Shown: positions 5,395-64,000 of the stretch, one piece after another
How positions within the stretch are numbered: the stretch's first letter is position 1
How the letters are laid out: each line of letters opens with the position of its first letter
NCBI RefSeq assembly: GCF_006345805.1
Contig: NW_021832440.1
Location: 124,001 to 188,000 of the forward strand
Length of the DNA: 64,000 nucleotides
Origin: Octopus sinensis
Lineage: Eukaryota
Direction: 5' to 3'
The notes under the pieces: generated by a model
What the model was told of the DNA's origin: nothing
What the model saw: only the letters and a program-made list of their open reading frames with translations
The model's database searches: none
Program-made: the position numbers and the translations under genes

Positions 5395-5683
5395 AGCATA
5401 CAATTTGATCAGCTACAATCAATTGGTGTCGTGATGCAATCGTTTATTTAAACTTCTTAATTATTATAGGCACTTTCGCGATGCCATGGATCATGAGAAA
5501 GCTTGTGCAGCACAGAAAACAATACGAGTAATTAGTTTATTCCATTTCCCGCGATCTTGGGCGACGTCCCGTAGTGCATCGAGATCGTCCCCCTCCTTCA
5601 ATTCTTTACCAGTCCTCTTTAGGTCTCTATCCAGAGTACCGACGTCTTTATTATTTCTTAATTATGAATATTAATTATCTTTT

Positions 5684-6730
5684 CTGAAAAAAGCTGCTGA
5701 ATCCGTCCTCAACGTCCAGCTCGATGCTCCGGGATGGGCCCAATGCTCGCTCCCACTGAGATTCGGAGGTGCGGGAATCCGTACTGCATCCGATTTGGCA
5801 CTTCTGGCATACCTATCCTCCCTTTCGATGTGCAACAACCTGACCTCGGAGATCCTACTCAAACCTTTCGGATCTTGCCTGGACGGTGCTTTTTCGGATG
5901 GGCTTGCTACCTGGGATCGCTCCTTTTCTGAGAGGCCTGGAGATTTCTTCTCCCAACGTGCCTGGGACACTATCGCATGCCGAGCGCGTGTGTCTGAGCT
6001 CTCGGCAACCCTTGATCAACACCGCCTGGCATGCCTTCGTGCGGCATCCGCCCCTCACTCTGGCAGCTGGCTGAATGCTCTTCCTCTTTCCAGTATCGGG
6101 ACGTGGCTGGACGATGCTGCCATACGCATCGGAGTCGCTCACCATCTCGGCCTGGATGTTTGCGCAAGTGGTGAGGACGTTGACGAAAAGGGACTGCACC
6201 CACTTTCCTGCAAGAGGAGCGCAGGCAGAGAACACAGACACAAGGCCCTCAATGAAATCGTAAAGGCCGGTCTCGAATCGGCGGGCATTCGTGCCTCCTC
6301 GAACCGGTCGGACTCGATCGGGGAGACGGCAAAAAGCCTGGCGGGATGACAATATTCCCGTACTTGTCGGGGAAGGCCCCTGTATGGGATGTTGCCGTTG
6401 TGGATACCTTTTCAAAGTCAGGATCCATTCTTCCGCCGTGAACCCTTGTTCGGCTGCAAACCACGCCGAAAAGATCAAAATACAAAAATATTCTTCGCTC
6501 GCGGACCGCTACCGCGCTACGCCAATTGCCCTGGAGACCGCTGGAGCCGCGGGAAAGGTGACTGACTCGTTCCTCAACGAGGTCGGGCAGTCCATTGGGA
6601 GAAGGCTCAAGGACCCGAGAGAGGGCTTCTGGTTCCGCCAGCGCATCGGTCTGGCCATTGTTCGCGGCAACGCACACTGCGTCCTTGCCGCAGGGACTTT
6701 TCAAAATCAATTTCTTTCATTTAATTCTAA
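5684..6730 (+). mobile_element. 5'-truncated CRE-clade copy, same family as the 53868-56980 element
   Basis: High nucleotide similarity to about 55900-56960; small deletions break the frame; ends ...AIVRGNAHCVLAAGT followed by an AT-rich tail. Confidence 0.9.
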
Positions 6731-27375: not shown

Positions 27376-27429
27376 ACCCTATATTTGCACTTTTTGTTCA
27401 ATGGCAAAATTGTATTTTAAACTCATTTT

Positions 27430-27960
27430 AAAAACTCGGCCGTCCCGGGGTCTTTTCCTTAGCAGCAGCGGTGGGATGAATCGCCTAAAGTTCATCTATC
27501 TCTTGTTCCCATTAACCCACGAATCCGGAAGGGATTTGCCACCCTTGGCGGTGCGGGTCTACAATTTCGTCGAACGGCTTGCACGGCTTGTTGTGCAAGA
27601 AGAGTGGTGATGGAATTTTTTGCCACACTCAGCTTAACGACGTCGTCAAAAGGGCTCAAGAGTCGGCTCGTTTTTTGTGACGCTGTTTCCAGGGACAGTT
27701 AGCAATTTAGGTTTTCCTAGTGTTCAGGTTAAGGAGTCAAAAGGAAAAAATATAGGTACATTTTGGACTCTCAAGTTTGTCCCCCTCGCCTTTGGAAACT
27801 TTAGAATCACCAGCAAGTACGCGACTCAATTTCTTACTGATATTGGTTGGAAAATTTCGACATAACTAAAGACCGGAGGGAGAGTAGCTGGCTTTTCCAA
27901 TGAATCGCGGTTGCTTTGTTCCGCGTAAACTTCCACTCAATACGCAGCGCGCCGTAGTTG
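27430..27960 (+). mobile_element. Highly degenerate CRE-clade 3' fragment
   Basis: ICHPWRCGSTISSNGLHGLLCKKS...HTQLNDVVKRA zinc knuckle and DRRESSWLFQ*IAVALFRVN terminus. Confidence 0.6.
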
Positions 27961-28132
27961 AGCTGACACGCAGGCTCTCCACTATCCTTTTCTTACTTTG
28001 TCTGTTCTCTGATTTTAATCAATTATAAGATTGAATTGTTTATATTGTTCAAGAAAAAGTAAAACCCCCCAAAACGAGGAAAAATCATTGACAGAGAGAT
28101 AAAAACAAGGCACAGAAGTGCCTCTTTTTATG

Positions 28133-28830
28133 CTAACCCCAACTATAATAACTCAAAACAACTTTTCTCCCGAACCATCCGGATCGTGGGACAGAAGATT
28201 CTTGTGAGTCCTCTATCCTTCCGTCAAGTTGTACTCCGTAAGCCAGTTTCAATGCGAAACGTTTTGTCTTTTCCAATTGTTCGATAAGGTAGTCACTCTC
28301 CTCCGTTCCTAACAAGTACGTTTCCCGACCCAGATAAAACCTGGTTAAGCTTTTAAGGATCTTCACACTCCTTTTCCTCTGATTTGATACGTGGTCGACG
28401 TACGAGCCGCAGCAGTAGTGTAAATTCAAGGTCTTGGAGAGATCCATAGCATAATCACTCATAGCATAAGCGCACGATGGCGCACAACAATTCCCTCTCC
28501 ACATCCATGGGATGTTGCTCTTCTCAAATGATAGGGTTAACTCTTTATCTGCTGTCCACTTCTTTAGCATGGCAATGCATGACTTAAGTCGTCTTCAAAA
28601 CTGGGAAATCTTTTTGAGATATCCGTAACCAAGATGTCATCAGCATATATGATAAGTTTGCTAGTACATACGAACGACAGGGGAATGTCCGCCAGAACGA
28701 GGTTAAAAATAAGTGTACTCAAACCGATCCCTTCTAGGTTCTACACATCCTGATAGACAGTTTCCACAGCGAACAAAGGATTTCCTTCAAGACAAATAGC
28801 TCTCCAGCCATCGATAAATCTTTATGCCTG
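28133..28830 (-). mobile_element. APE-class LINE reverse transcriptase fragment
   Basis: GSV*STLIFNLVLADIPL...IIYADDIL RT motifs, with stops. Confidence 0.65.
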
Positions 28831-28971
28831 CTTCGCTATAATATAATTTTTTTATAAATAAAAAATCAAATATTTCAAGCAATAACGTCATAATTCGCAA
28901 TAATCAATCTTGTTAATTATACGATAAATCGACAACTTAAGTAGAATTATTTCCGCATGTATTTTTTTAAC

Positions 28972-30973: not shown

Positions 30974-31537
30974 GTAATGAAATATTTTATTAGCCCTTAT
31001 TTCGAGATTTTCTAACTAATAAAATATATCAAAATCTCATTTTTCTAATAACATATTGTAAATTGACTGTTGTTTTAAATATTTGTCATTTTTTGAATAC
31101 CTTGATGAATATTTGAAAAAAAAATTTATTAAATAAACCGCAGGCAAATCAAAATATGACTTAAACCCTGACCTTAAAAATAAACAAAAATGCATTCATT
31201 ATCTACGTAATCATTTTTTTAATTTTTAAATTCCTGAACAACTACTCTTAAATCATTCTAATGCTCTGTTATCTAATGTTCAGTTACTGTTATTTTAATA
31301 TTACCGCGGTTATAAGTTAAAATGCATCAAGTTAAAACAATAGTAATTCCCTTTAAAAATAATCCGCTTGAAGTTCCTAATTCAATAAATCATACAGAAA
31401 TGCAACAAAGTATACGAAAAATATGGAAAACCGATAAGGAATAAAGTAAACTCAAAGCGAAATAGAATATTGGACAAGGGATTAAAAATATGCACGACCA
31501 GTTGTGCCAGCTGTTTATTAAGAATTACAAACTCACT

Positions 31538-31629
31538 ATTTACTAAAAATTAACGTGAGAGGCAACGCAACGTCAATTATGTTGGGGGGGTCCACTTCGG
31601 ATAGATGGCTTTGTTAACTTCTAGTAAAT
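31538..31629 (+). mobile_element. About 90-bp CRE-clade 3' end insertion with 17-bp inverted UTR copy at its 5' end
   Basis: 31555-31629 matches the reverse complement of about 25660-25736; 31538-31554 is 15/17 identical to the reverse complement of 31613-31629. Confidence 0.65.
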
Positions 31630-31729
31630 TACAGTAACTTTTGATTAAAATATATCATTTCACACTTAAAATTAACTAAACTAAATATTACTGCTCCAGT
31701 TGGCTAAGTTGAACAGCGCTTGCAAAGTA

Positions 31730-33985
31730 TCTTAATAATAAAATGGTATGGTGTGTGTCTGTCTGTCTGTCTGTCTGTCTGTGTGTGCACACCAACTTCA
31801 AATTGGCAATACGATGTCCTCGACTTACATGATGAGGTCCTTAAAACCTTCCCCCCAAAAAAATTAAAAAAAAAATTTCTGCATTTTGGTTAAAATGAAC
31901 AACTACAATGTCCTCGACTTACATGATGAAGTCCTTAAAACCTTCCCCCCAAAAAAATTAAAAAAAAATTTTCTGCATTTTGGTTAAAATGAACAACTAC
32001 AATGTCCTCGACTTACATGATGAAGTCCTTAAAACCTTCCCCCCAAAAAAATTAAAAAAAAATTTTCTGCATTTTGGTTAAAATGAACAACTACAATGTC
32101 CTCGACTTACATGATGAAGTCCTTAAAACCTTCCCCCCAAAAAAATTAAAAAAAAAATTTTCTGCATTTTGGTTAAAATGAACAACTACAATGTCCTCGA
32201 CTTACATGATGAAGTCCTTAAAACCTTCCCCCCAAAAAAATTAAAAAAAAATTTTCTGCATTTTGGTTAAAATGAACAACTACAATGTCCTCGACTTACA
32301 TGATGAAGTCCTTAAAACCTTCCCCCCAAAAAAATTAAAAAAAAATTTTCTGCATTTTGGTTAAAATGAACAACTACAATGTCCTCGACTTACATGATGA
32401 AGTCCTTAAAACCTTCCCCCCAAAAAAATTAAAAAAAAATTTTCTGCATTTTGGTTAAAATGAACAACTACAATGTCCTCGACTTACATGATGAAGTCCT
32501 TAAAACCTTCCCCCCCAAAAAAATAAAAAAAAATTTTCTGCATTTTGGTTAAAATGAACAACGACAATGTCCTCGACTTACATGATGAAGTCCTTAAAAC
32601 CTTCCCCCCAAAAAAATTAAAAAAAAATTTTCTGCATTTTGGTTAAAATGAACAACTACAATGTCCTCAACTTACATGATGAAGTCCTTAAAACCTTCCC
32701 CCCAAAAAAATTAAAAAAAAATTTTCTGCATTTTGGTTAAAATGAACAACTACAATGTCCTCGACTTACATGATGAAGTCCTTAAAACCTTTCCCCCAAA
32801 AAATCAAAAAATTATTTTCTGCATTTTGATTAAAATGAACAACGCGAATGTCCTCGACATTCATGATGAGGTCCATTAAAACCTTCAAGGCAAAAATCTC
32901 ACGTATTAAGAATATCCTTGATGAAAACGACAGCGAGAATATTAACAATGATGAACTCCCAATTATTCGCGATAAAGAAATTCAATTCATCCTATGTTTT
33001 TCTCTTTAAAATTAAATGCATATATCATTATCGACCATGAATCAAAATTAAAGCTATTATCATATTTGACTTTGACAGAATGTGCAATCACAGATTGCAC
33101 GACTTTGAATAGAGTGTGCAATTAACAGATTTTGAAAAACCACTTTGATAGTTGAAACCACATTAGCACAATCATTAACACAATTTACCACCAATTGACG
33201 CACGACCTTGAATAGAGTGTGCAATTAACAGATTTTGAAAAACACTTTGATAGTTGAAACCACATCAGCACAACCATTAACACAATTTACCACCAATTGA
33301 CAGCGCAATCAGAAGAATTTGCGTAAAAATATTAACTATTTACTTGAGTTTTTCGTAAAGATAGAATTTATTTTCGGTATGCCTCTTTTCCTAAACTTTT
33401 TTATTATTCAAAAATAATTTTTTAAATAGATAACCGAAGGAGGAAAAACGAAGCTGAAGAAAAAACGGTCAGCTTAATAAGGTAATTAATTAAATCTTTT
33501 TTGTGTGTCGCTTTTTTGTGTGTCGCTTTCTTGCCTGCCGCATTTCCGCCTGCCGCATCTCCCCCTGCCCCATTTCCGCCAGTAAAAAACAAAAAAATAA
33601 AAAAAGAAAAAAAAGGAAATTACAAAGGAAAAATGAAAAAATTAAATATAAAAAAAAATAAACCACAAAAAATGAAAAAAAAAGTTTGCAATGACAATAA
33701 ACAAGGCCCAGGGACAGTCATTAAAGGTAGTTGGGTTATTTTTAGAGAGTGAGTGCTTTTCACATGGACAGCTGTATGTGGGATGCTCGAGGGTAGGCAG
33801 AAGAGAAAATTTATTCATATATGCCAAGGAAGGACGGACGACAAACATCGTTTATCAACAGGCGATAGAATAGGGTTACATTAAACCAGGTAGTTTTATA
33901 CATCTACATAAACTTATAGTTGTTTGATGAAACAGGCCCTCCGCAGGAGCTAGGTCGCGGTGAGCGAAGCGAGCTGCCGAGCTAG
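31730..33985 (+). mobile_element. Non-autonomous Helitron, copy 1
   Basis: 5'-TC and CTAG-3' termini between host A (31729) and T (33986), no TSD; (GTCT)n near the 5' end; 94-bp array; helicase remnant [11 protein letters not shown]...[13 protein letters not shown]. Confidence 0.9.
31815..32880 (+). repeat. 94-bp tandem array inside Helitron copy 1 (11 full units plus a partial)
   Basis: Unit starts at 31815, 31909, 32003, 32097, 32192, 32286, 32380, 32474, 32568, 32662, 32756 and 32849. Confidence 0.95.
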
Positions 33986-34332
33986 TTACTAATAAAGAAA
34001 AATAGGCGTTTGAAATAGCTACTTTTTATGAATATTTGTTATTGATTATTCAGTAATTGATTAATCAATTAATCATTTTTCCGGAATGATTACAGTTGCA
34101 TGATTGTATTTTTTATCGGGTTTGATCATCAAAAAAATATATAAACTTACGATAATAAGAATCAAAATATTGAATTACAAAAAAATCGAACGTTAATTTA
34201 TCATATAAAAAAATATTATTGTAAAAAAAGAAAAATATCCTTTAATTTTAATACAAAATTGATTTATATTTTGTATTTAATTTATTATTTTAAATCGTAA
34301 AAGATTATAAATATAATCAGATCTAATTTCAT

Positions 34333-35033: not shown

Positions 35034-35993
35034 TTACTTACACTAACAATTTCCTCGGTTATACTAATCAGTGATTTTTATTAATTTGATTTTGGGTTTT
35101 ATAAGCTGAAAGGAGATTAAAGAGACAAAGTGATCTGTATATAATAAAAACGAGTCATCTAGGCCTATTTTGTAAACTAATTTTGGTGCAAAGAATATAC
35201 TTTAAATAAATCGATAATTTAGTTCGTTGTTAAATAAAATAGATCAAGGTGCATTTTTCTAATCAAAAATGATTTAAACAATCAAATTTTTTTGATCAAG
35301 AATGAAATTTTTATAAATATTCTAACATGAAATAATTTTTTTTTTTTTTTTGATGAAAACCAACCAATAACTACAAGTTAATTAATTAAAAGCTTCAAGT
35401 GCGGGAAGCCGACGCGATCGAGAAAGAATTAGAGCGTACTATCGCAAGGGATATCCGCTCGAAAAACCATCTCGATTCGCGGGCGTCGCCTGTGATGGCA
35501 GACATGCGGGATCCGATCTCCTGAACGAAGCTGATTGCCTTACTGCCCAAGGAACATGAAATAATTATACTTGAAATTCGAATAAAAAATTTGGTCGTTT
35601 CATATTTTCCTCAAAATAATTGCTTTATATTTAATATTGTTGAAAGGCTTTCATTACATCGTAATTATTATATATTTTTCTTTTAAGAGCAGGATTATTT
35701 TTGAATAACAAATTCTAATTATTGAACGCGTCATACTATGACGCACCATCACGATTTTTCGATTTTATTTCTTAATTTTGATACAAAAATGGAGATGACC
35801 TTTTTCATGGTTTAGAGTTCGAACTAAAAAGAAAACAAATTAGAGACCCAAAGAATAAAAACCAAATATTCAAGTATATCAATCCTCTCAAAATGTTAGC
35901 CGCTTTTACCTCTTTTAGTTATATTAATGGCATATTTTATATTCATAAGAATTGATTATTCAAAATTTAGTCCAAAGAATAAAAAACCATCTA

Positions 35994-40059: not shown

Positions 40060-41041
40060 ACTAACAGATTTCATAAATGAAGGACACAAAAAAAGAAATT
40101 GCAGGAGAAATCGATTGTATGCACTATCGACATTAAAAAAGCGTTTGACTCCGTCCCAAGGAAGATCCTAATTCAAAAGATATTTGGTACAAATATTTCT
40201 ACACCTATGAAGCTATGGATAGCGAATTTTTTGAGCGGACGTCGTGGGAAAGTGTGCGTCGGGAACGAGAGTTCAAGATCACGCTTATTGCCCAATGGTG
40301 TACCCCAGGGTTCCCCTTTATCCCCGACCCTCTTCAACTTGTTTCTGAATGATCTCCCGGTTCCTATGGATAATAATGACATACTACTCTCCTATGCCGA
40401 TGACATAGTTGTCGCATCTAGGGATGAAAATGTCGAATACGCGAAGGAAAGACTACAAATAATACTGGACGACTTATATGGATGGCTATATGAAAACAGA
40501 CTACATGCATGTTCCGAAGTCAGCAGTCACTCTATTCACGAAAAATAGGAAGATGGGGACGAAAATTATTGATGTCACGTTGAACGGAATTCCAATACCA
40601 CAAAAGAAAACACAGAAGATATTGGGAGTAACGCTTGATACTTTCCTCTGTTTTTCACCTCACGTAGAATCGATCGTATCAACATGTATAAAGAAGATCA
40701 ATTTTGTAAAAGCCTTCCTTTGGAACTGTGGGAGAACTTATCCGCCAGGGGTAGAGACCCTTTACAAGCAGTATATCGAGCCAACAATAAGCTATGCATG
40801 TGCTGCTTGGGGCTGTAACCTGGCAGCAACGAACCGGCTAAAAATCGAAAAAATTCAAGAAAGATCTATCAACCTACTGAAGGACCATACCGATAGGGAA
40901 ATTGTCCATAGAACACTGGAGTCTCTCGTAGAGGCAAATGAGGGGGGGATCGTGGAAATGGACCACAAACCATTCACCGTACATACAGAAAGTGTGTGGG
41001 GTCACGGTCGGAACATCGTGAAAAGATGGCTCGACTGTTGA
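40060..41041 (+). mobile_element. Jockey/I-group-like LINE RT fragment
   Basis: IDIKKAFDSVP...NGVPQGSPLSPTLFNLFLNDLP...SYADDIVV...KILGVTLD; frameshift near 40500. Confidence 0.85.
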
Positions 41042-42149: not shown

Positions 42150-42952
42150 CATTTTTTTTAAGAAAGACAACGAAAATCGTTAAGTCCCAGCGGCAAGGAC
42201 GCAGTGTGCGTTGCCCCGAACAATGGCCAGGTCGATGCGCTGGCGGAACCAGAGGCCCTCTCTCGTGTCCTTGAGCCTCCTCCCAATGGACTGCCCGACC
42301 TCGTTGAGGAACAAGTCAGTCTCCTTTCCCGCAGCTCCAGCGGTCTCCAGGGCGATTGCCGTAACACGATAGCGGTCCGCGAGCGAGGAATATTTTTGTA
42401 TTTTGGTCTTTTCGGCGTGGTTTGCAGCCGAACAAGGGTTTACGGCGGAAGAATGGATCCTCGATTTTGAAAAGGTATCCACAACGGTAACATCCCATAC
42501 GAAGGCCTTCCCCGACGAGTACGGGAATATTGTCATTCCGCCAGGCCTTTTGCCATCTCCCCGATCGAGTCCGACCGGTTCGAGGAGGCACGAATGGCCC
42601 GCCGATTCGAGACCGGCCTTCACGATTTCATTGAGGGCCTTGTGTCTGTGTTCCCTGCCTGCGCTCCTCTTGCAGGAAAGTGGGTGCAGTCCCTTTTCGT
42701 CGACGTCCTCACCGCATCTGCAGCGGTGTTTTGCACAAACATCCAGGCCGAGACGGTGAGCCACTCCGATGCGTATGGCAGCATCGTCTAGCCACGTCCC
42801 GATGCTGGAAAGAGGAAGAGCATTCAGCCAGCTGCCAGAGTGAGGGGCGGATGCCGCACGAAGGCATGCCAGGCGGTGTTGATCAAGGGTTGCCGAGAGC
42901 TCAGACACACGCGCTCGGCATGCGATAGAGTCTCAGGCACGTTGGGAGGAGA
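42150..42952 (-). mobile_element. 5'-truncated CRE-clade copy, same family as 53868-56980
   Basis: 242-aa ORF near-identical to the C-terminus of the 992-aa ORF; short 3' UTR and A8 tail. Confidence 0.93.
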
Positions 42953-43665
42953 CAACTGAACAAGAAAAATCCAAAATTCTGGAAACTGTACAAAATAATG
43001 AGCGGGACGGAAGCGAAGGGGAAAAATCATACTTAAATCGGTGGATTGAGCCTTTCTTCCTACTAAGAAAATCTTTGAGGTGTTCCGCCAGCAGCTAGCA
43101 GTGATTCTGGAAATGGACCCTTCATCAATTTTGCATTGGGAAATATTCTAGGAGTCGACTCAAAATTCAAGCTCAAAATATAGCTAAATTGTTTTAATAA
43201 ACCTATATTCTATTCTATATATTTTCCATGTAAAAAACGTTCACATCCTAGTAAAAATCTAAAAAGTAATCAGAATATTGTCTGATGATAATTTCCCTGG
43301 TTGTCTGTACATCAGTGGATAATCTCGAAACTAAATAACTTTAGTTTTTGAATTTTATATAACAATTTAATAGGGTACTAATATTAACTGGCAAGTATTC
43401 TACCTCTTCTCTTTACCGACTACAACTAACGAGTCTCTAGGACAGGGGTCGGCAGGATTTTTGTCTTCGCGGGCCAAAATTTTATTTTTGTATGCGATCC
43501 GGGCCAAACGAAAAAAAATCCTTATCGGTCACAAAAATAAGGCGACGCTTGTACATTGCGATCTTTTTTTATCAAGTTTTTTTTGCAACTTTCTTACGAA
43601 ATAAAAATTTATCAGTTAAAAATGATTATAAAGAAGTGAATTTATTTTACTCATTAATCTGACTA

Positions 43666-50123: not shown

Positions 50124-53100
50124 TATTTGATGTAAAAAATGTCTTTAATTTATATTTCATTTAAACGTTGTACCCATTTTGGCAAAAAGCTCGTTCCTAA
50201 TTTCCAGAAAAGATTTAGAAAAATGAGGACTTTAAGAATCCTGCATTTTAGAATCATTTTAGACTTTAGACTAAAAGGAGATTTTTCCAGAATAGATGCA
50301 TAGTTTCTTTTAAGTATGTGACTTTTTAATTACATTTTGAATATTTTATTGGAAATGGCAAATTTTTAAAAGTTCAATTTGATTGGATTGAGCATAGAAG
50401 ATAAGTTTAAACAGAACTCGGTTCTTTTTGTCATTTATGGCGACCATCTAACATTTTCTTAAGATACAAAGAACCGGAATACTTATTACTAGGGAAAAAT
50501 AAATCAATAAAGTCAATTTCAATTCAGAGTTAGACTTTAGTCTCACTTCTTTCAGAGTTTACTTGCCGCAATATAGTAGAAATTTTAGCTCAACAAAAAA
50601 TATCAGAAATAATTAATTTAATTTCAAATATCAAAGTTAGTTTGAATAGTTTAATTGTCACGGTTTTTTGATTTTGGATGAAACTGATGTTAAGAAAAAC
50701 AAATTTGTTATTTGTCTATAGTTGAAATGTCGGTGAGCTACTTTTCATATTGAAATTTTTTGTCGATTGACTTATATATTTTAATAACAAAATTTTATTT
50801 TATAATTAAAAGTTAATGGGATTTTTAGCAAAATTTTCAGAAATACTTTCAGTTCTTCTGACAACAGACTGTTTTGAGAGTGTGGTATTTGGATTTAAAT
50901 ATATTCGATTACAAAAATTAAAATCGTGCTGGTATTTGGGTTAAAATCGATGCCAAAGCAGAATGTGCTTTAAAACCGATTTCATAAATAAAAATAATAT
51001 TTTAAAATTTATAATTGATATTTTAGAATAACGAGAAAAAATCTAAATGCTTCATAATTTATTAAAATTTCAAAACAAGAATCTTCTGAAGGAGCAAGCC
51101 TGTCTGCACAGTTCATTTGTGATTAGAAGACCTAATTTTAGAGATTGAAACGAGAAATAGCAATGAGATCTGTCAAATTATTACCCCCCTCACAACCTAA
51201 ACCAAATTAGCGTTCAGTATTCATTGATTTTACTTTTTATATTAAGGTCTACTTATAAATTATTTTATGGGAGTCTGTTATGCAACGTGCTACTATCTCG
51301 ATGTGTGCTCTACCTGGACAACAAGAAACTAACAATATTATTAATAATAATATACCTAGAGCAGGATGGACAACCGCATCGGAGAGACAGACGTCCGATG
51401 GCAAGAACATCGTCTTTGCCATTGCTGAAGGGATCGAGTGCACGACCCGGGAGGACTGGATTAAATCCGCCCTTTCCCAAGTGTTGGGAAGAGCTTCCAG
51501 GATGCCCAGAAATGGGTGGCCTACCCTGCTTCAGTGTTTCAATCGACGCTTTAGCTCGAACCTATCGTTAGATGCACTGAAGAAGCTGGCCAAGACCCCT
51601 CCTCCTGGCTCGCGGGGGAGGACTGCCGCTGCGGTTACGCCGTCAGGATGCCCCCCGTGTTCTGAACAACACGAGCACCAGAGTAGTGAGTTATCGCTAC
51701 TCTTGCAGGTTAAGGAGATATTTAGTAGGCATATCTCTGCGAATCGTGTTGTCCCCCTTGCGGACCGCAGAGTGACCCGAAAGATACCTCGGTGGCAACT
51801 CAGAAGTGACGTGATGGGTTGCATCAATCGTGCCATAGTTTACGCGATCGTGCGTGAGCCTCCGGAGACAATGGACGAGATTTCTCTTTATTTGTACTCG
51901 GCACAGACAACCTATGATGAAATCACTCAGAGGCCTGCCCCAAAGAGTAGATGGAGAGAAAACATTGCCGCAAAAGTAGCCGCAAGGAAAGCCGAGCTGG
52001 AAGCGCTGACTGGGCACATTTTGAATGTGAGCAATGGGGTCAAGGGCAAGACTCCCCCCTTGGTGCGTACTTTACTTCGTCGGGAACGAGCTGCCAAATG
52101 GGACCTCAACGAGTTGAGGCGTGTCCGGGCAGAGAGGGAGGAGCTGATTCTCGTTTATCAGAAGAAGCTCTCAACTCATGAGTCTCGGTGTCAGCGCAGG
52201 CGGGAGAACAACCTGTTTGAATTTAATCGCAGGTCGTTCTATCGTCGGTTGCACGGAGAGACGAAGGAGGGTACCCAGCAAAAGGCCGAAATGCTTGACA
52301 CATGGGGGAGTATGTGGAAAGCACGTCCTCGCAAGGGTGTGTCGTTTCCGTTTTGTGGACCCGATGCTCCCTTGATGACCGAGTCTTGTGGTGTCCCTGA
52401 CATCCGCAAGAAGTTCGATGAAGCAGTAACCCGTCTCTCTGACTGGAAGACACCTGGGGTCGATAAAGTGTATAATTTCTTTATTAAAAACTAGCTCGGC
52501 AGCTCGCTTCGCTCACCGCGACCTAGCTCCTGCGGAGGGCCTGTTTCATCAAACAACTATAAGTTTATGTAGATGTATAAAACTACCTGGTTTAATGTAA
52601 CCATATTCTATCGCCTGTTGATAAAAGATGTTTGTCGTCCGTCCTTCCTTGGCATATATGAATAAATTTTCTCTTCTGCCTACCCTCGAGCATCCCACAT
52701 ACAGCTGTCCATGTGAAAAGCACTCACTCTCTAAAAATAACCCAACTACCTTTAATGACTGTCCCTGGGCCTTGTTTATTGTCATTGCAAAACTCATCCT
52801 CAAAGGAAATTGCAGCCTTTTAAATCTAAATGGTGATTCATCAGAAATTATCGGAATTCGTGGAATATAAACATCCTCACCTCTATACTTACCTGTTAAT
52901 GTCGTCGCCTCTATTACGTTAGCCATCAAATTTTTGATAACTAACCTCGTTCCGTTGCATAATTTAGGTGGCGCAAGATTTCGTAATAAAACCACTGGAA
53001 CGCCTATCTTTAACTTTAAAAGATGATTGGGCATTCCAGAGGGATCTAAGGAGTTTAAAAATTCAATCCGGTTGAATTTTTAGAAAATAACAAAAAAAAT

Positions 53101-53867
53101 AAAAAAAAACAAATAAAAATAAATAATTTAAAAACAAACAAATAAAAAAAACAAAAAAAAAAACTTTAAAAATTTGTAAAATAGTATAAAAAAAAATCTC
53201 TGCCGCCACGGCAACAACCTGTCTAATTTTTTTAACAGCCAATTAAGATAATGCTTAAGAGCCTTTATAGTCCGGAGATTTAGCTTAGTGACCTTGATTA
53301 GACAAACCACTGGCGGAAATGGGGCAGCCGGAGATGGGGCAGGCGGAGATGCGGCAGGCAGAGTAGCAGCAGCCAAAAAAGCGACACACAAAAAAGATTT
53401 AATTAATTACCTTAAGCTGACCGTTTTTTCTTCAGCTTCGTTTTTCCTCCTTCGGTTATCTATTTAAAAAATTATTTTTGAATAATAAAAAATATTAGGA
53501 AAAAAGAGGCATACAGAAAATAAATTCTATCTTTACGAAAAACTTCTTTTCTTAAGGTCGTCTTCCCTCCTTCGGTTATCTATTGAAAAAATTATTTTTG
53601 AATAATAAAAAAGTTTAGGAAAAGAGGCATACCGAAAATAAATTCTATCTTTACGAAAAACTTAACTAAATAGTTAAGATTTTTACGCAAATTCTTCTGA
53701 TGGCGCTGTCAATTGGTGGTAAATTGTGTTAATGATTGTGCTAATGTGGTTTCAACTATCAAAGTGTTTTTCAAAATCTGTTAATTGCACACTCTATTCA
53801 AGGTCGTGCGTCAATTGGTGGTAAATTGTGTTAATGATTGTGCTAATGTGGTTTCAACTATCAAAGT

Positions 53868-56800
53868 TAGAATTTGGAAAATTAACACCGAAAATAGTTA
53901 AGTCCAACGTGCGTTGTTGTTGTTGTTGTTGTTTTTAAACGCTTCTCGATCTGTGTGAAATATATGACAAACTCTGAAGAAAATCGAACTATGAAAAAAC
54001 CTGAACAGTTCACTCGCTCCCCGACAGTATGTCAGTCGTGCCTCGTGTCAAACCCCCGCAAACGGGGAATCCACTGCGCCCTCTGCAATGCCCATTTCCA
54101 CCTGAGCTGTGTATCTTTGTCTAAGGCGACTGCAAGTGCCTTGGGCGCATGGCACTGTGCCCGCTGCCTCTTCAACTCAAAGGGCGCTGGGCCAAATCGG
54201 CGACCCTCTCGTACTACTTCCCGCCACAATCTCTCGACTGAAGAATTTATTCTTTCCCTGTCTTCGCTTCGTGGCACAAGAGACATCCCTCTCCGCATTC
54301 CCAAACAAGCCCGCCTGACGGCCGCTTCCTGCCTCGAACAAATTATCTCAGAAGCACTCAGTTCCGAAGAAGACCTCCCGTGGTTCCGTATCTTCCTGTT
54401 CGCACCTCTCGTCCTCGGAAACAAGCACGAGCCGACCATTCCCGGCAAGGGAATCTCGTCCGCAATTAAGTCTCGGGCAGTTTCTTTCGGCGAGGAATGC
54501 GACAATCTTGTCCTACCCTTCCCTCTTCCCTCCTCTCAGAGGAAGTCCGGCTTATGCGAAAATGGCATCGGACAGGACGCCAGGATGATCGATCGGGTGA
54601 ATCGAAAGCTCCTCGAAGGAGACGTAAGAGCTGCCCTCCGTGTCTTGTGCTCCGGGGACTCTGTTGCCGAGTGTACGTCCAGAACATCAACTTTGCTGAG
54701 GTCAAAACATCCGCCGGCCCCTGAAGACCTAAGGCCTTGGACTCCCCCCCGAAGCCCCACACCGATGATCATCACTGAGGAAGAAGTTCTGTCGGGAATC
54801 AGATCTTTCGGAGCGAGCAGCAGCGGGGGAATTGACGGCCTTCGGCCGGGGCATATCAAGGACATGACTTCTGCGATCACCGGGGAATCCGGCTCTCGGC
54901 TCTTGTGTACAATCACGAAACTGGTCGGAAGGATCATCGACGGAAAGATCCCCCTCTTCGCGAGGAATCTCTTTTTCGCTGCCCACCTTCACGCTTTTCA
55001 AAAACCGGACGGAGGTGTCCGCCCAATAGCGGTTGGCAATTACTTCAGAAGGCTCTGCGGAAAAGTTTCTGCCAGAAGGGTTGCAACGAGAATCGGGGCT
55101 GAGCTTTCGCCTACGCAAGTCGGTGTTGGTGTGCGTGGCGGCTGCGAAGGAGCCGTTCACGCCACCAGGGGGTTCTTCTACATGGGGCAACGAGTTACTA
55201 CCGATTTTATTGCTGTGAAGCTTGATATCACCAACGCTTTCAACAGCGTGCGCCGGGATGCTATTTTGGAAACATGCGCTCGAAGAGTACCAGAAATAAT
55301 CAATCTTGTCTCGCTTGCCTACGGCTCGGAGAGCAGTCTTGTATACGGGAATGAGATCATCCGTTCGGAGACCGGCGTGCAACAGGGTGATCCGCTAGGG
55401 CCACTCCTCTTCGCGTTGACAATCGATGAGGCAGCTCGACTTGCTGTCTCTCAATTCAATCTGTGGTATCTTGATGATGCCACATTGGGTGGCCATGCTG
55501 ACCACGTTATTCGGGATGTCGAACACATCGTTCCAGCACTGGCTACCCTCGGCCTCTCGGTCAACGCGAAGAAGACCGAGATCATTAATGTCTCGTGTTC
55601 GGAGGCCGACTTCCGATCCGCTGTGGCCCGCCTCAGAGCAACCCTGCCTTGTGCGAACGTTACCCCAATCGATGATGTCACCTTTCTCGGTGGATCCCTG
55701 TCCTACACGAAGCTCCAATCCATGCTTTCCGCCAAAGCTGAACACTTCCAAAGATTTTCTACAAATCTCTCTATCTTGTCTTCGCACACTGCCTTTTTCC
55801 TCTTGAAGAACAGCATTCACATGCCGAAACTCATTTTCACCCTCAGGAGCAATCCCTGCTTCCTGCATATGGACCTACTCGCCGCATACGACGTAATCCT
55901 GAAAAAGACTGCCGAATCCGTCCTCAATGTACACCTCGATGGTCCTGGATGGGCCCAATGCTCGCTCCCATTGAGATTCGGAGGTGCGGGAATCCGCACT
56001 GCATCCGATGTGGCACTTCCGGCATATCTATCCTCCCTTTCGATGTGCAACAACCTGGCCTCTGAGATCCTACTCAACTCTTTCGGATCTTGCCTGGATG
56101 GTGCTTTTTCGGATGGGCTCACTACCTGGGATCGCTCCTTTTCTGAGAGGCCCGAAGATTTCTCCTCCCAACGTGCCTGGGACTCTATCGCATGCCGAGC
56201 GCGTGTGTCTGTGCTCTCGGCAACCCTTGATCAACACCGCCTGGCATGCCTTCGTGCGGCATCCGCCCCTCACTCTGGTAGCTGGCTGAATGCTCTTCCT
56301 CTCCCCAGCATCGGGACGTGGCTAGACGATGCTGCCATACGCATCGGAGTGGCTCACCGTCTCGGGCTGGATGTTTGTGCAAAACACCGCTGCAGATGCG
56401 GTGAGGTCGTTGACGAAAAGGGACTGCACCCACTTTCCTGCAAGAGGAGCGCAGGCAGGGAACACAGACACAAGGCCCTCAATGAAATCGTGAAGGCCGG
56501 TCTCGAAATGGCGGGCCATTCGTGCCTCCTCGAACCGGTCGGACTCGATCGGGGAGATGGCAAAAGGCCTGACGGGATGACAATATTCCCGTACTCGTCG
56601 GGGAAGGCCCTTGTATGGGATGTCACCGTTGTGGATACCTTTTCGAAATCGAGGATCCATTCTTCTGCGGCAAACCCTTGTTCGGCTGCAAACCACGCCG
56701 AAAAGATCAAAATACATAAATATTCTTCGCTCGCGGACCGCTACCGCGTTACGGCAATCGCTCTGGAGACCGCTGGAGTTGCAGGAAAGGAGACTGACTC

Positions 56801-56980
56801 GTTCCTCAAAGAGGTCGGGCAGTCCATCGGGAGAAGGCTCAAGGACTCGAGAGAGAGCCTCTGGTTCCGCCAGCGCATCGGCCGGGCCATTGTTCGGGGC
56901 AACGCACACTGCGTCCTCGCCGCTGGAACTTAACTATTTTCGGTGTTAATTTTCCAAATTCTAAAAAAAAAAAAAAAAAA
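53868..56980 (+). mobile_element. Full-length CRE-clade non-LTR retrotransposon
   Basis: 12-bp TSD AACTATCAAAGT at 53856-53867 and 56981-56992; ~18-nt poly(A); 36-bp inverted terminal duplication; single intact ORF; the empty site is visible in Helitron copy 1 (about 33135-33160). Confidence 0.95.
53964..56933 (+). CDS. PHD-RT-CCHC-RLE polyprotein (about 989 aa from the first ATG)
   Basis: PHD at 54030-54167; RT motifs GIDGLRP, VRPIAVG, KLDITNAFNSV, GVQQGDPLGPLLF, WYLDD; CRC...HPLSC...RHKALN knuckle; KRPDG...WDVTVVD RLE; AIVRGNA terminus; no stops. Confidence 0.95.
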   Translation: MTNSEENRTMKKPEQFTRSPTVCQSCLVSNPRKRGIHCALCNAHFHLSCVSLSKATASALGAWHCARCLFNSKGAGPNRRPSRTTSRHNLSTEEFILSLSSLRGTRDIPLRIPKQARLTAASCLEQIISEALSSEEDLPWFRIFLFAPLVLGNKHEPTIPGKGISSAIKSRAVSFGEECDNLVLPFPLPSSQRKSGLCENGIGQDARMIDRVNRKLLEGDVRAALRVLCSGDSVAECTSRTSTLLRSKHPPAPEDLRPWTPPRSPTPMIITEEEVLSGIRSFGASSSGGIDGLRPGHIKDMTSAITGESGSRLLCTITKLVGRIIDGKIPLFARNLFFAAHLHAFQKPDGGVRPIAVGNYFRRLCGKVSARRVATRIGAELSPTQVGVGVRGGCEGAVHATRGFFYMGQRVTTDFIAVKLDITNAFNSVRRDAILETCARRVPEIINLVSLAYGSESSLVYGNEIIRSETGVQQGDPLGPLLFALTIDEAARLAVSQFNLWYLDDATLGGHADHVIRDVEHIVPALATLGLSVNAKKTEIINVSCSEADFRSAVARLRATLPCANVTPIDDVTFLGGSLSYTKLQSMLSAKAEHFQRFSTNLSILSSHTAFFLLKNSIHMPKLIFTLRSNPCFLHMDLLAAYDVILKKTAESVLNVHLDGPGWAQCSLPLRFGGAGIRTASDVALPAYLSSLSMCNNLASEILLNSFGSCLDGAFSDGLTTWDRSFSERPEDFSSQRAWDSIACRARVSVLSATLDQHRLACLRAASAPHSGSWLNALPLPSIGTWLDDAAIRIGVAHRLGLDVCAKHRCRCGEVVDEKGLHPLSCKRSAGREHRHKALNEIVKAGLEMAGHSCLLEPVGLDRGDGKRPDGMTIFPYSSGKALVWDVTVVDTFSKSRIHSSAANPCSAANHAEKIKIHKYSSLADRYRVTAIALETAGVAGKETDSFLKEVGQSIGRRLKDSRESLWFRQRIGRAIVRGNAHCVLAAGT

Positions 56981-57249
56981 AACTATCAAAGTGGTTTTTC
57001 AAAATCTGTTAATTGCACACTCTATTCAAGGTCGTGCAATCTGTAATTGCACATTCTGTCAAAGTCAAATATGATAATAGCTTTAATTTTGATTCATGTC
57101 GATAATGGTATATGCATTTAATTTTAAAGAGAAAAACATAGGATGAATTGAATTTCTTTCTCGCGAATAATTAGGAGTTCATCAGTGTTAATATTCTCGC
57201 TGTCGTTTTCATCAAAGATATTCTTAATACGTAAGATTTTTGCCTCGAA

Positions 57250-58420
57250 GGTTTTAATGGACCTCATCATGAATGTCGAGGACATTAACGTTGTTCATTT
57301 TAATCAAATGCAGAAAATATTTTTTTGATTTTTTGGCGGGAAGGTTTCAAGGACCTCATCATGTAAATCGAGGACATCGTAGTTGTTCATTTTAACAAAA
57401 ATGCAGAAATTTTTTTTTAATTTTTTTGGGGAGAAGGTTTTAAGGACCCCATCATGTAAGTCGAGGACATCGTAGTTGTTCATTTTAACCAAACTGCAGA
57501 AAATTTTTTTTAATTTTTTTTGGGGGGGAAGGTTTTAAGGACCTCATCATGTAAGTCGAGGACATCGTAGTTGTTCATTTTAACCATAATGCAGAAAATT
57601 TTTTTTTAATTTTTTTGGGGGGGAAGGTTTTAAGGACCTCATCATGTAAGTCGAGGACATCGTAGTTGTTCATTTTAACCAAAATGCAGAAAATTTTTTT
57701 TTAATTTTTTTGGGGGGGAAGGTTTTAAGGACCTCATCATGTAAGTCGAGGACATCGTAGTTGTTCATTTTAACCAAAATGCAGAAAATTTTTTTTAATT
57801 TTTTTGGGGGGGAAGGTTTTAAGGACCTCATCATGTAAGTCGAGGACATCGTAGTTGTTCATTTTAACCAAAATGCAGAAAATTTTTTTTTAATTTTTTT
57901 GGGGGGGAAGGTTTTAAGGACCTCATCATGTAAGTCGAGGACATCGTAGTTGTTCATTTTAACCAAAATGCAGAAAATTTTTTTTAATTTTTTTGGGGGG
58001 GAAGGTTTTAAGGACCTCATCATGTAAGTCGAGGACATCGTAGTTGTTCATTTTAACCAAAATGCAGAAAATTTTTTTTTAATTTTTTTGGGGGGGAAGG
58101 TTTTAAGGACTTCATCATGTAAGTCGAGGACATCGTAGTTGTTCATTTTAACCAAAATGCAGAAATTTTTTTTAATTTTTTTGGGGGGAAGGTTTTAAGG
58201 ACTTCATCATGTAAGTCGAGGACATCGTAGTTGTTCATTTTAACCAAAATGCAGAAAATTTTTTTTTAATTTTTTTGGGGGGGAAGGTTTTAAGGACTTC
58301 ATCATGTAAGTCGAGGACATCGTAGTTGTTCATTTTAACCAAAATGCAGAAAATTTTTTTTTAATTTTTTTGGGAGGGAAGGTTTTAAGGACCTCATCAT
58401 GTAAGTCGAGGACATCGTAT
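57250..58420 (-). repeat. About 94-bp tandem array inside Helitron copy 2 (about 13 units)
   Basis: GAGGACATCGTAG anchor recurs every 93-95 bp. Confidence 0.95.
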
Positions 58421-61249
58421 TGCCAATTTGAAGTTGGTGTGCACACACAGACAGACAGACAGACAGACAGACACACACCATACCATTTTATTATTAAGAT
58501 TGCAAACCTATCCATGATTGCATGTGTCGAGCAATCGAACAGTTTACACTAGACCCTGGCTCGATTCCAGAGTGGTTATGTACTGGGGTCACTTATTTGA
58601 TCCCTAAAGTAGATAACCCTTCCGCTCCGACAGATTATCGTCCGATAACCTGTATGCCCAACCTGTACAAGTTGATGACTAAGGTGGTGGCTACTGAGGT
58701 CAGAAATTTCGTGGAGGTGAATGGGATTCTGTCCGAGAACCAGTTAGGTACTCGGCGTGATTGCCAGGGAGCTAAGGAGCAGGCACTGATCAACAAATGC
58801 CTCGCGAGAGCCCACGGAAACTCACTAGTGTCAATGTGGGTGGATGTGAAGAAGGCATATGACTCGGTTGATTATGCCTACCTCGTTGAGTGTCTGCGAA
58901 GGCTTAAGTTGCCAATGTGGTTTATCAAATTTGTTGCAACTGTGATGGACAGGTGGAACGTCCATCTAAATTACAACAAATGCGATATAGGCGAGGTGAA
59001 ACTAGAGAGGGGCATATTACAGGGCGACAGCATGTCTCCGCTGCTGTTCGTCCTCTGCCTAGAACCGCTGAGTAGAGTCCTCACTGCCCAATTCGAACAA
59101 ATGTCGATCGAACATGAAGGAGGGTGTTTTAGCACCAACCATCTCATGTTCATAGACGACATTAAGCTGTTCGCTCGGTCTTCAGAGATCCTTCACTCAA
59201 TGGGTAAAGTCCTGAAAGGTTTCATGAAGGCCGTGGGGTTGGAGCTCAACTACAACAAGTCGGCGACTAACACCCCTGTGTGTGGTGACCTAGTCAAAGT
59301 CTTGGAGGAACACCAAGGATATAAGTATCTTGGTGTGGTTGAGAGTCCAGCCTCATTAATCACACCCGAAACGAGAAAGTGTGTAGTGGAGGGTGTGCGT
59401 AGTAGGGCGGCAATGTTATGTAAGACTCGGCTAATGCACGGAACTTATTTCATGCCTTGAACGAGTATGCCATCTCATTGCTAAACTACTACGTTGGCCT
59501 GATCGAATTCGAGCCGAGTGAGTACGATGAAATGGACCTTATTGTCCGAAGAGTACTCCGAGAGAATCATGTCCACGTGTTGGCAAGCAATAAGGAGAGA
59601 TTGTACTTGTCTCGCGGGCAGCTAGGACGTGGACTGAGTAACATCGTACACTTAAGTGAGCGAATTCTTACTAAGATGCACGACACCTTGTGGAGTGGGT
59701 CGAGTGTATCCCAAAGGAAGGCTGCCATCCTTGCTGCTGAAAAAGCGCGTGGTACACACCTAGGGACCATAAAAGGCTATGTGTCGGCTAAGTATGGTCT
59801 AGGTGCTACCCAAGTTAATGTGAAGGAGTTGATCAAACTTCAAAAGGAGTCTTTAATTAAAAAGATCAACTTAAAAGTCCTTCACAAGACTCTCTTTAGC
59901 AGCCTGGACAACCCGCACATTGACGTATCGTCGTCATCTACGTGGCTGAAATATGGGAATAACTCTCCCCGATCAGAAGGGTTGTTCTCATATTTGCAGG
60001 ATAGAAACTTTTTTAATGGTCAACGGAAACAGTGTAACCACTGTAAGAGTAAGGCAATGACCGTTGACCATTTAGCCACGAAGTGCGGGAGTATGCTTTA
60101 CCATGATTACACATGGAGGCATAACGAGGTGGTGAGGTCCCTCCATCTTTTGCTCTGCAATAAGTACGGCTTGAGGCGGTCCAGAAAGTTGCGAACCCAT
60201 CGAGTTCAATCGGTGTGTGAGAACTCGCGGGTGTGCATTAAGGTGGATACCCCCATACGCACCTCGATTGTTGTCCAGCACAACAGACCCGACATTGTGG
60301 TCCACGATAAGGGGAGATTGTTATCGTGGAGGTGGGCATCACGTGCCTAGACCGTTTGCAGATAGTGGAAGTGGAGAAAAGGAGGAAGTATGACCTCCTT
60401 GCAAACGAGCTAGGACTGATGCACCAGTGCAAAGTCCATGTCATCCCGTGTGTGATGACATGGGATGGACTGGTCACCAAATACCACAAGCGGTACTTAA
60501 GACAGTTGGATGTAGATAAGTCTCTACAGGCTTATATACAGTCAACTGTTCTTAAGAGGACTCTGGAGAGTGTTTCGTTTGATGCTCGCCGATCCAGCCC
60601 TTTCCTGACGTTTAGTCAGCAAGAGGCGCTGGACTGCACCTTCTCGAAGGTCTACAGTGCCAGAGAAGAGGAGGAAGAAGGGGAGGAGGTGCGTGGAGTG
60701 CCGCCTTCTGCTCACTTCGAAGGCTCTGGACTTAGTTAGTAAAATTACTTAGTTAATTAGTTTCTTTCTTAATAAAAATAAAAAGTAAAAAAAAAAAAAA
60801 ATAAATTATTTTATGGGATTCAATGGAAAACTTAAGTTATTTCAATTTTAATTTTAAATCATGTTAAAATTTTAAATAATTTAAAAAAAAAAAAAAAAAA
60901 AAAAAATTTAATAAATATATTTGTTGATGACAGGCTTGTTAGGCGTCAAAGTCGCTCTCAGCGCTCGCGACATAATCTTTTCAACTTTTTAGAACTTTTT
61001 TATTAATAAGATTTTATTTTTTTATTATCAATATTTTTTTGCAATGAAATGTTTTGTAGGAAAAATATTTGTTTTGTATTTAGATAATTGACCTGACCAA
61101 TCTGGCGCCCCGGCCGGTCTGGACGGTGACATTAAATGTTAAAGAATCAGTTTTTTAGTTGAAAAAATATAGTATTTCTTTTTTGTCCATATACTCTTAC
61201 TCTAACACCGAATTTCCCGAAAAACGTTAATTTTGCTCATTTAGTATAT

Positions 61250-62109: not shown

Positions 62110-62265
62110 TTAAATTAGAATTCAAAAACTGAACACGTATTTAATTAGTAGCAGAGGATAAGATGGAATGGCAATTCCCACGCAAAATGGCTATTGATAT
62201 GCGTTGGAAAAGCCATGTCCGTTCCCGATGATCATTTCTCCTTCTGCTTGCCAGGTCCCCCAGTT
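62110..62265 (-). mobile_element. Short CRE-clade 3' end
   Basis: RERTWLFQRISIAILRGNCHSILSSATN* followed by a short UTR and A8. Confidence 0.65.
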
Positions 62266-62664
62266 TAATAAGTTAAATGATGATATCCTGCACTTTCAAG
62301 GAATTCCGAAGAATATCCTTTCCTTTGACCGATGATATGTTATTGGCCCACAAGAAAATAAATTTTATGATATCCTCCAAAGGTACTCTGGCTCCCTCTA
62401 GCCAAGTTCCTGTACATTTTTACAACGTATTTTATACCGGCTTTCAATCCAGAACTAGTTCTGCACTCTCTTTTGTGACAATACCATAACGGTGGCGTCT
62501 TTTGGTAAATTGAACAGGTTGAGTTCACGTCACATTTAAATTTATAACACGTGGGATTATTATTTTATTTTATTGTAATTAATTATAAAACACATATATT
62601 ATCACTGGAAAAAATAGTATTATTTTGAAACTCGCTAAAAAGTGGCTGTAGACTACTACAAAAG

Positions 62665-64000
62665 TACCGGAATTTTTTAGTTCTGGGACCGAGGACTCCC
62701 GACGTCTCCACTGCGGTGAGATAATGCACTGTATTTCTTGATTTTTAGCGTTTCGGCCAGGTTAGCTGCGGAGCCCGGCTCTGCGGCCATTTTCGAAAGG
62801 GAAAGTCGTTAGGCCGTCAGGACGTTTACCATCCTCCCGAACCTGGCCGACCGGTTCCAACTGTGATGGGAATCCGGCAGTTTCAAGGGTCCGCTTAACT
62901 ATGTCGTTCAGGGCAATGTGTCGGGGAAAGCGTCCGGAGCTTTTCTGGCACGATAATGGGTGCAATTCAAAGGGGTCAACAGTCGATCCACAGCGGCACC
63001 GGTGTTTTCGGCATACGTTTAGTCCCAGGCGCAATGAGACGACGATCCTCAGGCAATCGTCGTTCAATAAGGTTCCAATAGATCCCATAGGGATAGCGGT
63101 CAACCAAGCCCCCGAATATGGTTGCGAGGGAGCCAATAAACAAGCCAAGTGATGTTGGTTAAACTTAGGCTTGAGGTTGTTCGACTTCTGATCACAGAGA
63201 ATCCTGTCCCATTCGTCTTGTGCGTGTGTATTCTGTGGAAGCTCAAGAGACATCCCAAGCCAGCGACTTTCTGCGGCGACTGACTCTGAGTCCATAGGAG
63301 ATTCGGTAACGGGTTGGAGAATCTCTTGGACAAGGGTGCTCGTGGCATGTGTAGGAGAAAGAAATGCTGGCAAAGAAAGGTCAGTGGCTGACCGCACACC
63401 GATGCCGCCACGACCGATGGGGAGTGTTGCCTGTTCCCAGCCAAGATCGTCAAAGAAGGCATTACATATTGATTCGAGGCAAGTCCTGAGAGCATGGTCG
63501 AATCTGGAGAGGCTTTCGGGATTGGCAAAGCATGGAGCGCTTCTAAGTGTAAACAATAGTTTGGGGATGGCGAAACAGTTCCTCAATAGAAACAGGGCCG
63601 AATGGGAATCGATGATACCAAGATTACGGGACATTGATACAAGGTTTGGTGTTTTTTCTGATAATATCCAAACGACACCGGTGTTAAAAATCGGGGAACC
63701 CAGAATCTTGAGATTACTGGGCGAGGTGACATGGATGTTGGGAAGTAATGATTCGATAGAACCATGGGCAACGGAGAAACGGTAGACATCATAACTGATG
63801 TTAAAGATTTCAGATTTTGGGGAATTGATTTCGAGGCCAATTGCGTTTAATGCAGAAATTAAAACTCTCAGGTCGTCAAGAACGGATTCGAGAGTACCTC
63901 CGATAGTGGCATCGTCCAAATACCACGCATTGAAAACGAAGGATACACTTCTGGCAACGGGATCGATTGCCAGGGCAAAGAGAAGAGGACCCAGAGGGTC
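62665..64000 (-). mobile_element. CRE-clade element, divergent subfamily; runs off the window end; 3' deletions
   Basis: DPLGPLLFALAID...AWYLDDATIGG...RNCFAIPKLLFTLRS...WEQATLPIGRGGIGVR...GKRPDGLTTFPF. Confidence 0.9.

Follow-up and report, generated by a model that had tools for sequence, protein, structure and literature searches.

A 64,000-nucleotide stretch of Octopus sinensis DNA (contig NW_021832440.1, positions 124,001 to 188,000; the whole stretch is called the window, and all positions below refer to it) contains an apparently intact non-long-terminal-repeat retrotransposon, here named element A, that carries an exact inverted copy of its own 3' end at its 5' junction. The 36 nt at 53868-53903 are the exact reverse complement of 56928-56963 (100% complementary). 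The copied piece begins at the first base past the left target-site duplication (TSD). Most likely this inverted copy is the scar of one aberrant insertion and not a built-in feature of the family. The reading that we favour, tentatively and with slightly less than an even chance, is a single aberrant event of target-primed reverse transcription (TPRT) through the 'dual priming' variant of twin priming. The features concerned are collected in Table 1.

The 5' junction and the empty target site

With the ambiguous T/A at their outer ends included, the arms found by the repeat search extend over 53867-53903 and 56928-56964 (37 nt, 100% complementary). The 36-mer has two sites in total in the window, even when up to three mismatches are allowed, and 0 would be expected (100 shuffles). 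Likewise, the longest exact inverted repeat between the sequences upstream and downstream of the open reading frame (ORF) of element A measures 37 nt, against a mean of 9.4 and a maximum of 13 in shuffled sequences. The 3' arm is made up of the last sense codon ACT (56928-30), the stop codon TAA (56931-33) and the 30-nt 3' untranslated region (UTR; 56934-63), and the A-run follows directly after it. The 5' arm has no poly(T), bar the ambiguous T at 53867, against a run of 17 A at the 3' junction. The outer end of the inverted copy falls within 1-2 nt of the point where the UTR gives way to poly(A), and is complementary to the last base of the UTR and the first A of the tail. In the 3' UTR RNA only a small hairpin (56924-56956, z = -1.4, not significant) was predicted.

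For comparison there is an empty paralogous site in the second arm of a large inverted, interrupted duplication (26624-34000 versus 50883-58500, 93-99% identical, with a spacer of about 18.5 kb as assembled), which holds 94/95-bp satellite arrays (31810-32886 and 57247-58419) and 102-bp units. The minus strand there gives two alignments, 31807-33153 against 58328-56981 and 33142-33463 against 53867-53547; the segment 33142-33153 is common to both flanks of the insertion and holds the TSD sequence once. This shows that 53868-56980 is a single insertion, with one 12-bp TSD (AACTATCAAAGT) around the whole composite. The 36-nt piece is missing from the empty site and therefore came with the insertion, not with the target; a candidate origin of the 36-mer within the satellite target was rejected on the same ground. 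Element A is found in one arm of the duplication only, and hence was inserted after the duplication, provided that the palindrome is as assembled. The repeat search and the empty site together confirm the arrangement described in the first-pass annotation: TSD, exact inverted 36-bp repeat without poly(T), full-length element, poly(A), TSD.

These landmarks also bear on two trivial explanations. That the piece is an error of assembly or sequencing, or that a local rearrangement after the insertion duplicated the 3' end in inverted form, is very improbable: although the large inverted duplication and the satellite arrays of the window can confuse assemblers, the 36-nt piece respects the TSD edge, the UTR/poly(A) boundary and the start of the 5' leader, and the arms of the duplication differ by the presence or absence of the insertion, so that neither is a collapsed or mirrored read. 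Elements with a restriction-like endonuclease (RLE) can re-hit one site, and very short truncated copies are present in many families of long interspersed nuclear elements (LINEs). It is nevertheless hardly credible that the composite arose from two insertions, with an extremely 5'-truncated copy of 36 nt lying in opposite orientation next to, or placed before, the full-length one: the piece has no outer poly(T) and no TSD of its own, one 12-bp TSD brackets the composite, and the piece is identical to the 3' UTR variant of element A itself.

The direction of copying is indicated by copy B, a second member of the family in the window, whose 3' end reads ACTTAACGATTTTCGTTGTCTTTCTT and is followed by A8. 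Its first ca. 20 nt match the 3' arm of element A and the remainder differs. Because copy B shares ACTTAAC.ATTTTCG.TGT with element A, the 3' arm is native and the 5' arm derived; copying therefore proceeded from the 3' end towards the 5' junction. The 5' arm agrees with the UTR variant of element A and not with that of copy B. A pair of terminal inverted repeats (TIRs) of a miniature inverted-repeat transposable element or DNA transposon was ruled out, for the 3' arm holds the end of the ORF and is common to copy B. Nor do the two arms form both outermost termini of element A, since within the TSD the right arm gives way to 17 nt of poly(A).

Table 1. Features of element A, its target site and its in-window copies
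Feature	Position	Strand	Remarks
Left TSD, AACTATCAAAGT	53856..53867	+	Last 12 nt of a 102-bp satellite unit; identical to 56981-56992
Inverted antisense copy of last codon, stop and whole 3' UTR	53868..53903	-	Complementarity 100%; missing from empty site
5' leader, CCAACGTGC to first ATG	53904..53963	+	(GTT)7 at 53913-53933; starts CCAACG
Single intact ORF	53964..56933	+	PHD, reverse transcriptase, CCHC and restriction-like endonuclease motifs
Source arm: ACT codon, TAA stop, 30-nt 3' UTR	56928..56963	+	First ~20 nt common to copy B 3' end
Poly(A) tail, 17 nt	56964..56980	+	Neighbouring As ambiguous with UTR end and TSD
Right TSD, AACTATCAAAGT	56981..56992	+	Matches left TSD; once in empty paralog
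Empty paralogous target site	33142..33153	-	Other arm of large inverted duplication
Copy B	42167..42957	-	95% identical; 5'-truncated at about element A position 56161; shorter variant 3' UTR + A8
Copy C	5606..6699	+	~91% identical; 5'-truncated, decayed, frameshifts, altered 3' end

Formation of the inverted copy

On the top strand the order is target (...AAAGT), reverse complement of the 3' UTR, 5' leader, ORF, 3' UTR, A17 and downstream target. According to the dual-priming reading, the bottom-strand nick would prime a normal first-strand complementary DNA (cDNA) from within the poly(A), and this cDNA would reach the RNA's 5' end. The top-strand nick (...AAAGT-3'OH) would also serve the reverse transcriptase (RT) of the element as a primer, with a transcript of the element, a second RNA or a tail-less one, offering its 3' end. 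Synthesis on the top strand would start where the UTR meets the poly(A), possibly aided by T:A pairing over 1 nt, and after about 36-42 nt the nascent strand would switch to the 3' end of the finished first-strand cDNA, possibly through an imperfect CCA.C microhomology. The second strand would then be completed, and fill-in of the 12-nt overhang would yield the TSD.

Several properties known from related enzymes accord with such a course. LINE RTs, those of RLE elements among them, jump from one template end to another without homology, whichever of the two endonuclease types they come with, and accept RNA as well as DNA as template (PMC6895275); in addition, TPRT requires the 3' module of the template (PMC11371274). 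A start at a defined RNA 3' landmark fits a polymerase initiating on an RNA 3' module, and would not be expected of one that left a template there by chance. The two-RNA model of 'dual priming' was put forward for L1 and has never been validated (PMC2837659). At the inner junction the reverse complement continues as GGT.GC, with 5 of 6 matches to 56921-56926 if A56927 is skipped, and the first 3-6 nt of the leader (CCAACG) may thus be microhomology with the continuing inverted copy after a one-base skip.

The first-pass annotation had already suggested that the second nick primed on an RNA 3' end and that a template switch followed. This route is physically consistent and equals the dual priming of L1; what had not been considered is cDNA snap-back, which gives the same product. 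Here the 3' end of the finished first-strand cDNA (...CGCACGTTGG-3') would switch onto its own 5' region, near the downstream target, copy about 36 nt of that region up to the poly(T) boundary, and jump to the upstream top-strand overhang before the second strand is made. We hold this origin to be possible, if rather unlikely. Snap-back is a defined class of 5' junction among insertions made by R2 protein in human cells, where antisense insert sequence separates the upstream target from the RNA-templated 5' end, in many cases that of a full-length cDNA (PMC11371274 and PMC11331408). It predicts a final sequence identical to that of element A, and the CCA/TGG microhomology with its 1-nt slip suits it equally. 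However, snap-back needs three successive templates (RNA, cDNA 5' region and top-strand overhang), and it needs a cDNA 5' region freed of RNA, while no RNase H domain was detected by Pfam in the ORF of element A. Moreover, it leaves unexplained why the exit falls exactly at the UTR/poly(T) boundary and does not run into the poly(T) and the target. Dual priming is favoured because it needs two top-strand templates as opposed to three bottom-strand ones, and because it explains naturally the anchoring within 1-2 nt of the 3' UTR terminus.

Dual priming in turn has several points against it, the first being that the final sequence is the same as the product of snap-back. The inner microhomology is imperfect, with its 1-nt slip and one mismatch, and its p value of about 0.01-0.02 is post hoc and weak. 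The first-strand junction has 17 A's and the inverted copy 0-1 T, so that the two primings would not have begun at one and the same point of identical RNA molecules; likewise a 5' poly(T), expected if dual priming proceeds by annealing of the tail, is not seen at this junction. Furthermore, R2-type models cut the top strand after cDNA synthesis, with the first RNA held in heteroduplex, so that dual priming would call for a second RNA or for steps in an unusual order. Finally, the case is a single locus.

The 5' leader has peculiarities of its own. A (GTT)7TTT microsatellite at 53913-53936 is either native 5' UTR or filler, non-templated or templated. The 9-mer CCAACGTGC at 53904-53912 recurs in sense inside the ORF (56168-56176), and this second site lies 7 nt downstream of the truncation point of copy B (about 56161; chance about 0.01-0.02, post hoc). 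This second occurrence might point to filler of more complex origin at the 5' junction, drawn from several templates.

The element, its family and its relatives

The ORF of element A is uninterrupted and encodes 989-992 amino acids (989 from the first ATG at 53964). Pfam recognizes a PHD finger at residues 23-68 (1.9e-5) and RVT_1 at residues 346-542 (1.7e-16) with an intact YLDD; it finds no APE domain. CCHC and RPD...D...K restriction-like endonuclease motifs are situated towards the C-terminus, at about residues 808-916. In an alignment with 14 relatives, D504 and D505 are invariant, and by inspection C810, C812, H822, C826, R868-P869-D870, D886 and K916 are invariant or nearly so. As a profile, the family matches R2 proteins best in the PDB (1e-19), and also group II intron RTs; the single sequence of element A against R2 reaches only 1e-9. 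The endonuclease region has no sequence-level match to the solved RLE of R2, the only RLE LINE with solved structures in this PDB comparison. The N-terminus (53964-54170, residues 1-68), again as a profile, matches the H3K4me3-reader PHDs of BPTF, TAF3 and PHF2/PHF8 in the PDB. The PHD finger suggests that in this LINE lineage targeting may be guided by chromatin marks and not by sequence; literature searches for PHD-bearing RLE LINEs were unproductive.

The hallmarks of TPRT are present: an A17 tail, a 12-bp TSD checked against the empty site, and the 5'-truncated copies B and C. Since relatives of about 970-1050 amino acids cover 97-100% of the ORF, element A is full length, and by its motifs it appears to be an intact non-long-terminal-repeat retrotransposon of the RLE type, with a putative RLE fold. 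It was labelled CRE in the first-pass annotation, but this label is unproven. Elements of the CRE clade (CRE1/CRE2, SLACS, CZAR) are defined by insertion at spliced-leader (mini-exon) genes. Element A sits in a unit of a 102-bp satellite, Rfam identified neither a spliced-leader gene nor any other RNA gene in the window, and copies B and C sit at sites unrelated to that of element A. Element A adds a new member to the RLE LINEs, not placed in any one of the clades CRE, NeSL, R4, HERO and R2. Copies at 95% and 91% identity show that this family has been present for some time. The GC content of element A is about 54%, and that of the host background about 30-36%.

Whether the inverted piece belongs to the family as such depends on these copies and on more distant relatives. 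Full-length RNA or DNA of the family might normally begin with the reverse complement of the 3' UTR, either inherited within the 5' UTR or regenerated at each insertion. This we judge distinctly unlikely, although the sole full-length copy at hand does carry the piece, the arms are perfect and match the 3' UTR variant of element A and not that of copy B, and the window offers no direct contradiction since copies B and C are 5'-truncated. Neither B nor C has its own inverted 3' UTR at the 5' junction, and the search for an inverted piece of the own 3' end at the 5' boundary was negative in all six in-window copies tested (B, C and four fragments of related families); a sole 13-nt match in this test was AT-rich, near-palindromic and distant from any junction. 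An inspection of the 5' junction of copy B likewise revealed no reverse complement of its own 3' UTR. This junction (42958-42990, minus strand) has a possible 6-bp TSD, TGGATT, separated from the truncated 5' end by 15 extra nt (TTTCTTGTTCAGTTG), which do not come from the 3' UTR of copy B.

The search was extended to related families with the same domain layout. The relatives tested comprised eight families on nine contigs (P0001, P0002, P0003, P0007, P0013, P0016, P0019 and P0021; loci L001, L002 and L071-L077), at 37-47% amino-acid identity to element A, each contig spanning the ORF, at least 150 nt upstream of it, and the 3' UTR; the sample holds no full-length copies of the family of element A itself. 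Tails were seen in all four of the relatives' 3' ends that were read and not cut by the end of the contig. In these eight families the longest inverted repeat between 5' and 3' ends measured 7-11 nt, the level of shuffled sequence and not above chance, and TIR-like ends are therefore not a trait of these relatives. The true TIR-like ends offered as an alternative by the first-pass annotation thus find no support in the eight families or in the six other in-window copies and fragments. Other considerations point the same way: an internal promoter would leave a piece upstream of the native +1 untranscribed, a perfect 36-bp RNA panhandle would be a likely target of double-stranded-RNA responses, and a survey of natural R1/R2 junctions reports no such ends (the word 'inverted' occurs 0 times in PMC2718515). 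More doubtful still is the stronger form, in which each full-length insertion makes the inverted 3' UTR anew and second-strand synthesis is normally target-primed on 3' UTR RNA at the top-strand nick. If it were true, full-length copies would systematically gain TIR-like ends that co-vary with their own 3' UTR variant; if the piece is no feature of the family, full-length copies would start at or near CCAACGTGCG directly after the TSD.

Beyond the window, database relatives of element A share 37-49% identity with it, and are mostly unnamed metagenomic ORFs plus 'uncharacterized' proteins of Octopus. Searches for copies of the same family gave nothing above 49% identity with the full-length protein, no match with the N-terminal 232 amino acids, and none in scans of viral contigs. 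An 18-mer pattern from the 3' UTR hit 47 metagenome and 21 prokaryote-genome stretches; by blastn none of these holds the element, and we read the hits as chance. Some relatives have a cysteine protease domain of the deubiquitinase/SUMO-protease type fused to the RT ORF (P0014, P0018, P0107 (UCH), P0109 (OTU) and P0078 (Ulp1)), and in L077 (3951-5581) the UCH domain has an ORF of its own, downstream of the one for the RT.

The region is a graveyard of RLE-LINE elements. Fragments of several distinct related families, with 37-58% amino-acid identity to element A, are situated at 4197-4890, 6756-6950, 9157-9573 (N-terminal/PHD), 10684-10848, 25696-25995, 27540-27668, 35407-35532 and 62147-64000, the last of which runs past the end of the window at 64000. 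Two RT ORFs belong to other types of retroelement (40099-41041 and 58522-60350; RVT_1 at 2e-24 and 2e-30, respectively), and a Pif1-type helicase fragment at 52552-53034 may have its origin in a Helitron or in a Pif1 gene of the host. Most long ORFs of the window have no Pfam domain. Only two recognizable host-type exons are present, one with a CPSF_A domain and one that begins a gamma-glutamyltranspeptidase (22823-23209 and 29125-29526). Hardly any 5-residue words of the CPSF_A exon recur in any of 5.8 billion database proteins, and the exon appears to be either a decayed pseudogene or derived from a source organism not represented in the protein database.

Significance and comparison with known systems

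Formation of the 5' junction and priming of the second strand are the least understood step of TPRT. The junction of element A would be the cleanest sequence signature so far of an upstream nick used on an RNA 3' end by dual priming or, alternatively, a natural example of snap-back in a LINE with a restriction-like endonuclease. One locus by itself makes an instructive anecdote; should the junction recur in the family, this would make the mechanism testable and would bear on the by-products that R2-based tools for gene insertion leave. In the literature searched, an inverted 3' end at the 5' junction is undocumented for a natural RLE element. The first-pass annotation knew of no description of such a junction for CRE elements, but the phenomenon is less unprecedented than this implied: dual priming has been proposed for L1 (PMC2837659), and snap-back is documented for R2-protein insertions (PMC11371274 and PMC11331408).

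As to the element itself, the RLE clades CRE, NeSL/Utopia, R4, HERO and R2 (Kojima and Jurka 2015, PMC4640811) share with element A the layout of one ORF in which an N-terminal zinc-binding domain precedes a central RT, followed towards the C-terminus by a CCHC motif and a PD-(D/E)xK-like nuclease. Element A differs from them by an N-terminal PHD finger, no evident site specificity, a poly(A) tail and a 12-bp TSD, and its family is only distantly related in sequence to the solved R2 proteins. The cysteine-protease domains of some of its relatives recall the Ulp1 of NeSL/Utopia (PMC4640811).

Among natural junctions, full-length R2 and R1 copies resemble element A in having extra nucleotides, microhomologies and duplications at their 5' ends (Stage and Eickbush 2009, PMC2718515), a variation that these authors attribute to the priming of second-strand synthesis. 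Their catalogue covers precise junctions, microhomology, non-templated bases, and target duplications or deletions, and does not list an own inverted 3' end. The PRINT snap-back junctions (PMC11371274 and PMC11331408) also involve an RLE-type RT and an antisense insert between the upstream target and an often full-length cDNA, and constitute a minority by-product of 5' junction formation. Unlike element A, however, they are engineered, in human cells, with an avian R2 protein at ribosomal DNA; the antisense piece is attributed there to DNA-templated extension of the cDNA 3' end, and anchoring at the template 3' terminus is not described in the accessible text of the two sources.

In classical L1 twin priming (Ostertag and Kazazian 2001, as cited in PMC2837659), as here, a top-strand overhang primes a second cDNA within one TSD, and the inverted and direct segments are joined, often through microhomology. 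It uses an internal site on the same RNA, so that the inverted part is the more 5' one and sequence is usually lost. The earlier remark that classical twin priming does not duplicate the 3' end agrees with this account. Element A, in contrast, has its extreme 3' end duplicated, nothing lost and a full-length direct part: of the marks of L1-style twin priming it has the single TSD bracket, and lacks a more 5' inverted segment and a truncated direct one. A further parallel is L1 dual priming, or the poly(A)-anchored variants of twin priming (Meyer et al. 2010, PMC2837659), where both nicked strands prime at the RNA 3' end and the product has an inverted 3'-end segment at the 5' junction, a sense insert and one TSD. 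The L1 loci concerned show only a 5' poly(T), have no recognizable inverted L1 sequence and are all 5'-truncated, whereas element A has 36 nt of unique 3' UTR inverted, no poly(T), a full-length direct part and a restriction-like instead of an APE endonuclease. The junction is thus a variant of known aberrant 5'-junction products, unusual in its anchoring at the 3' UTR terminus beside a full-length copy.

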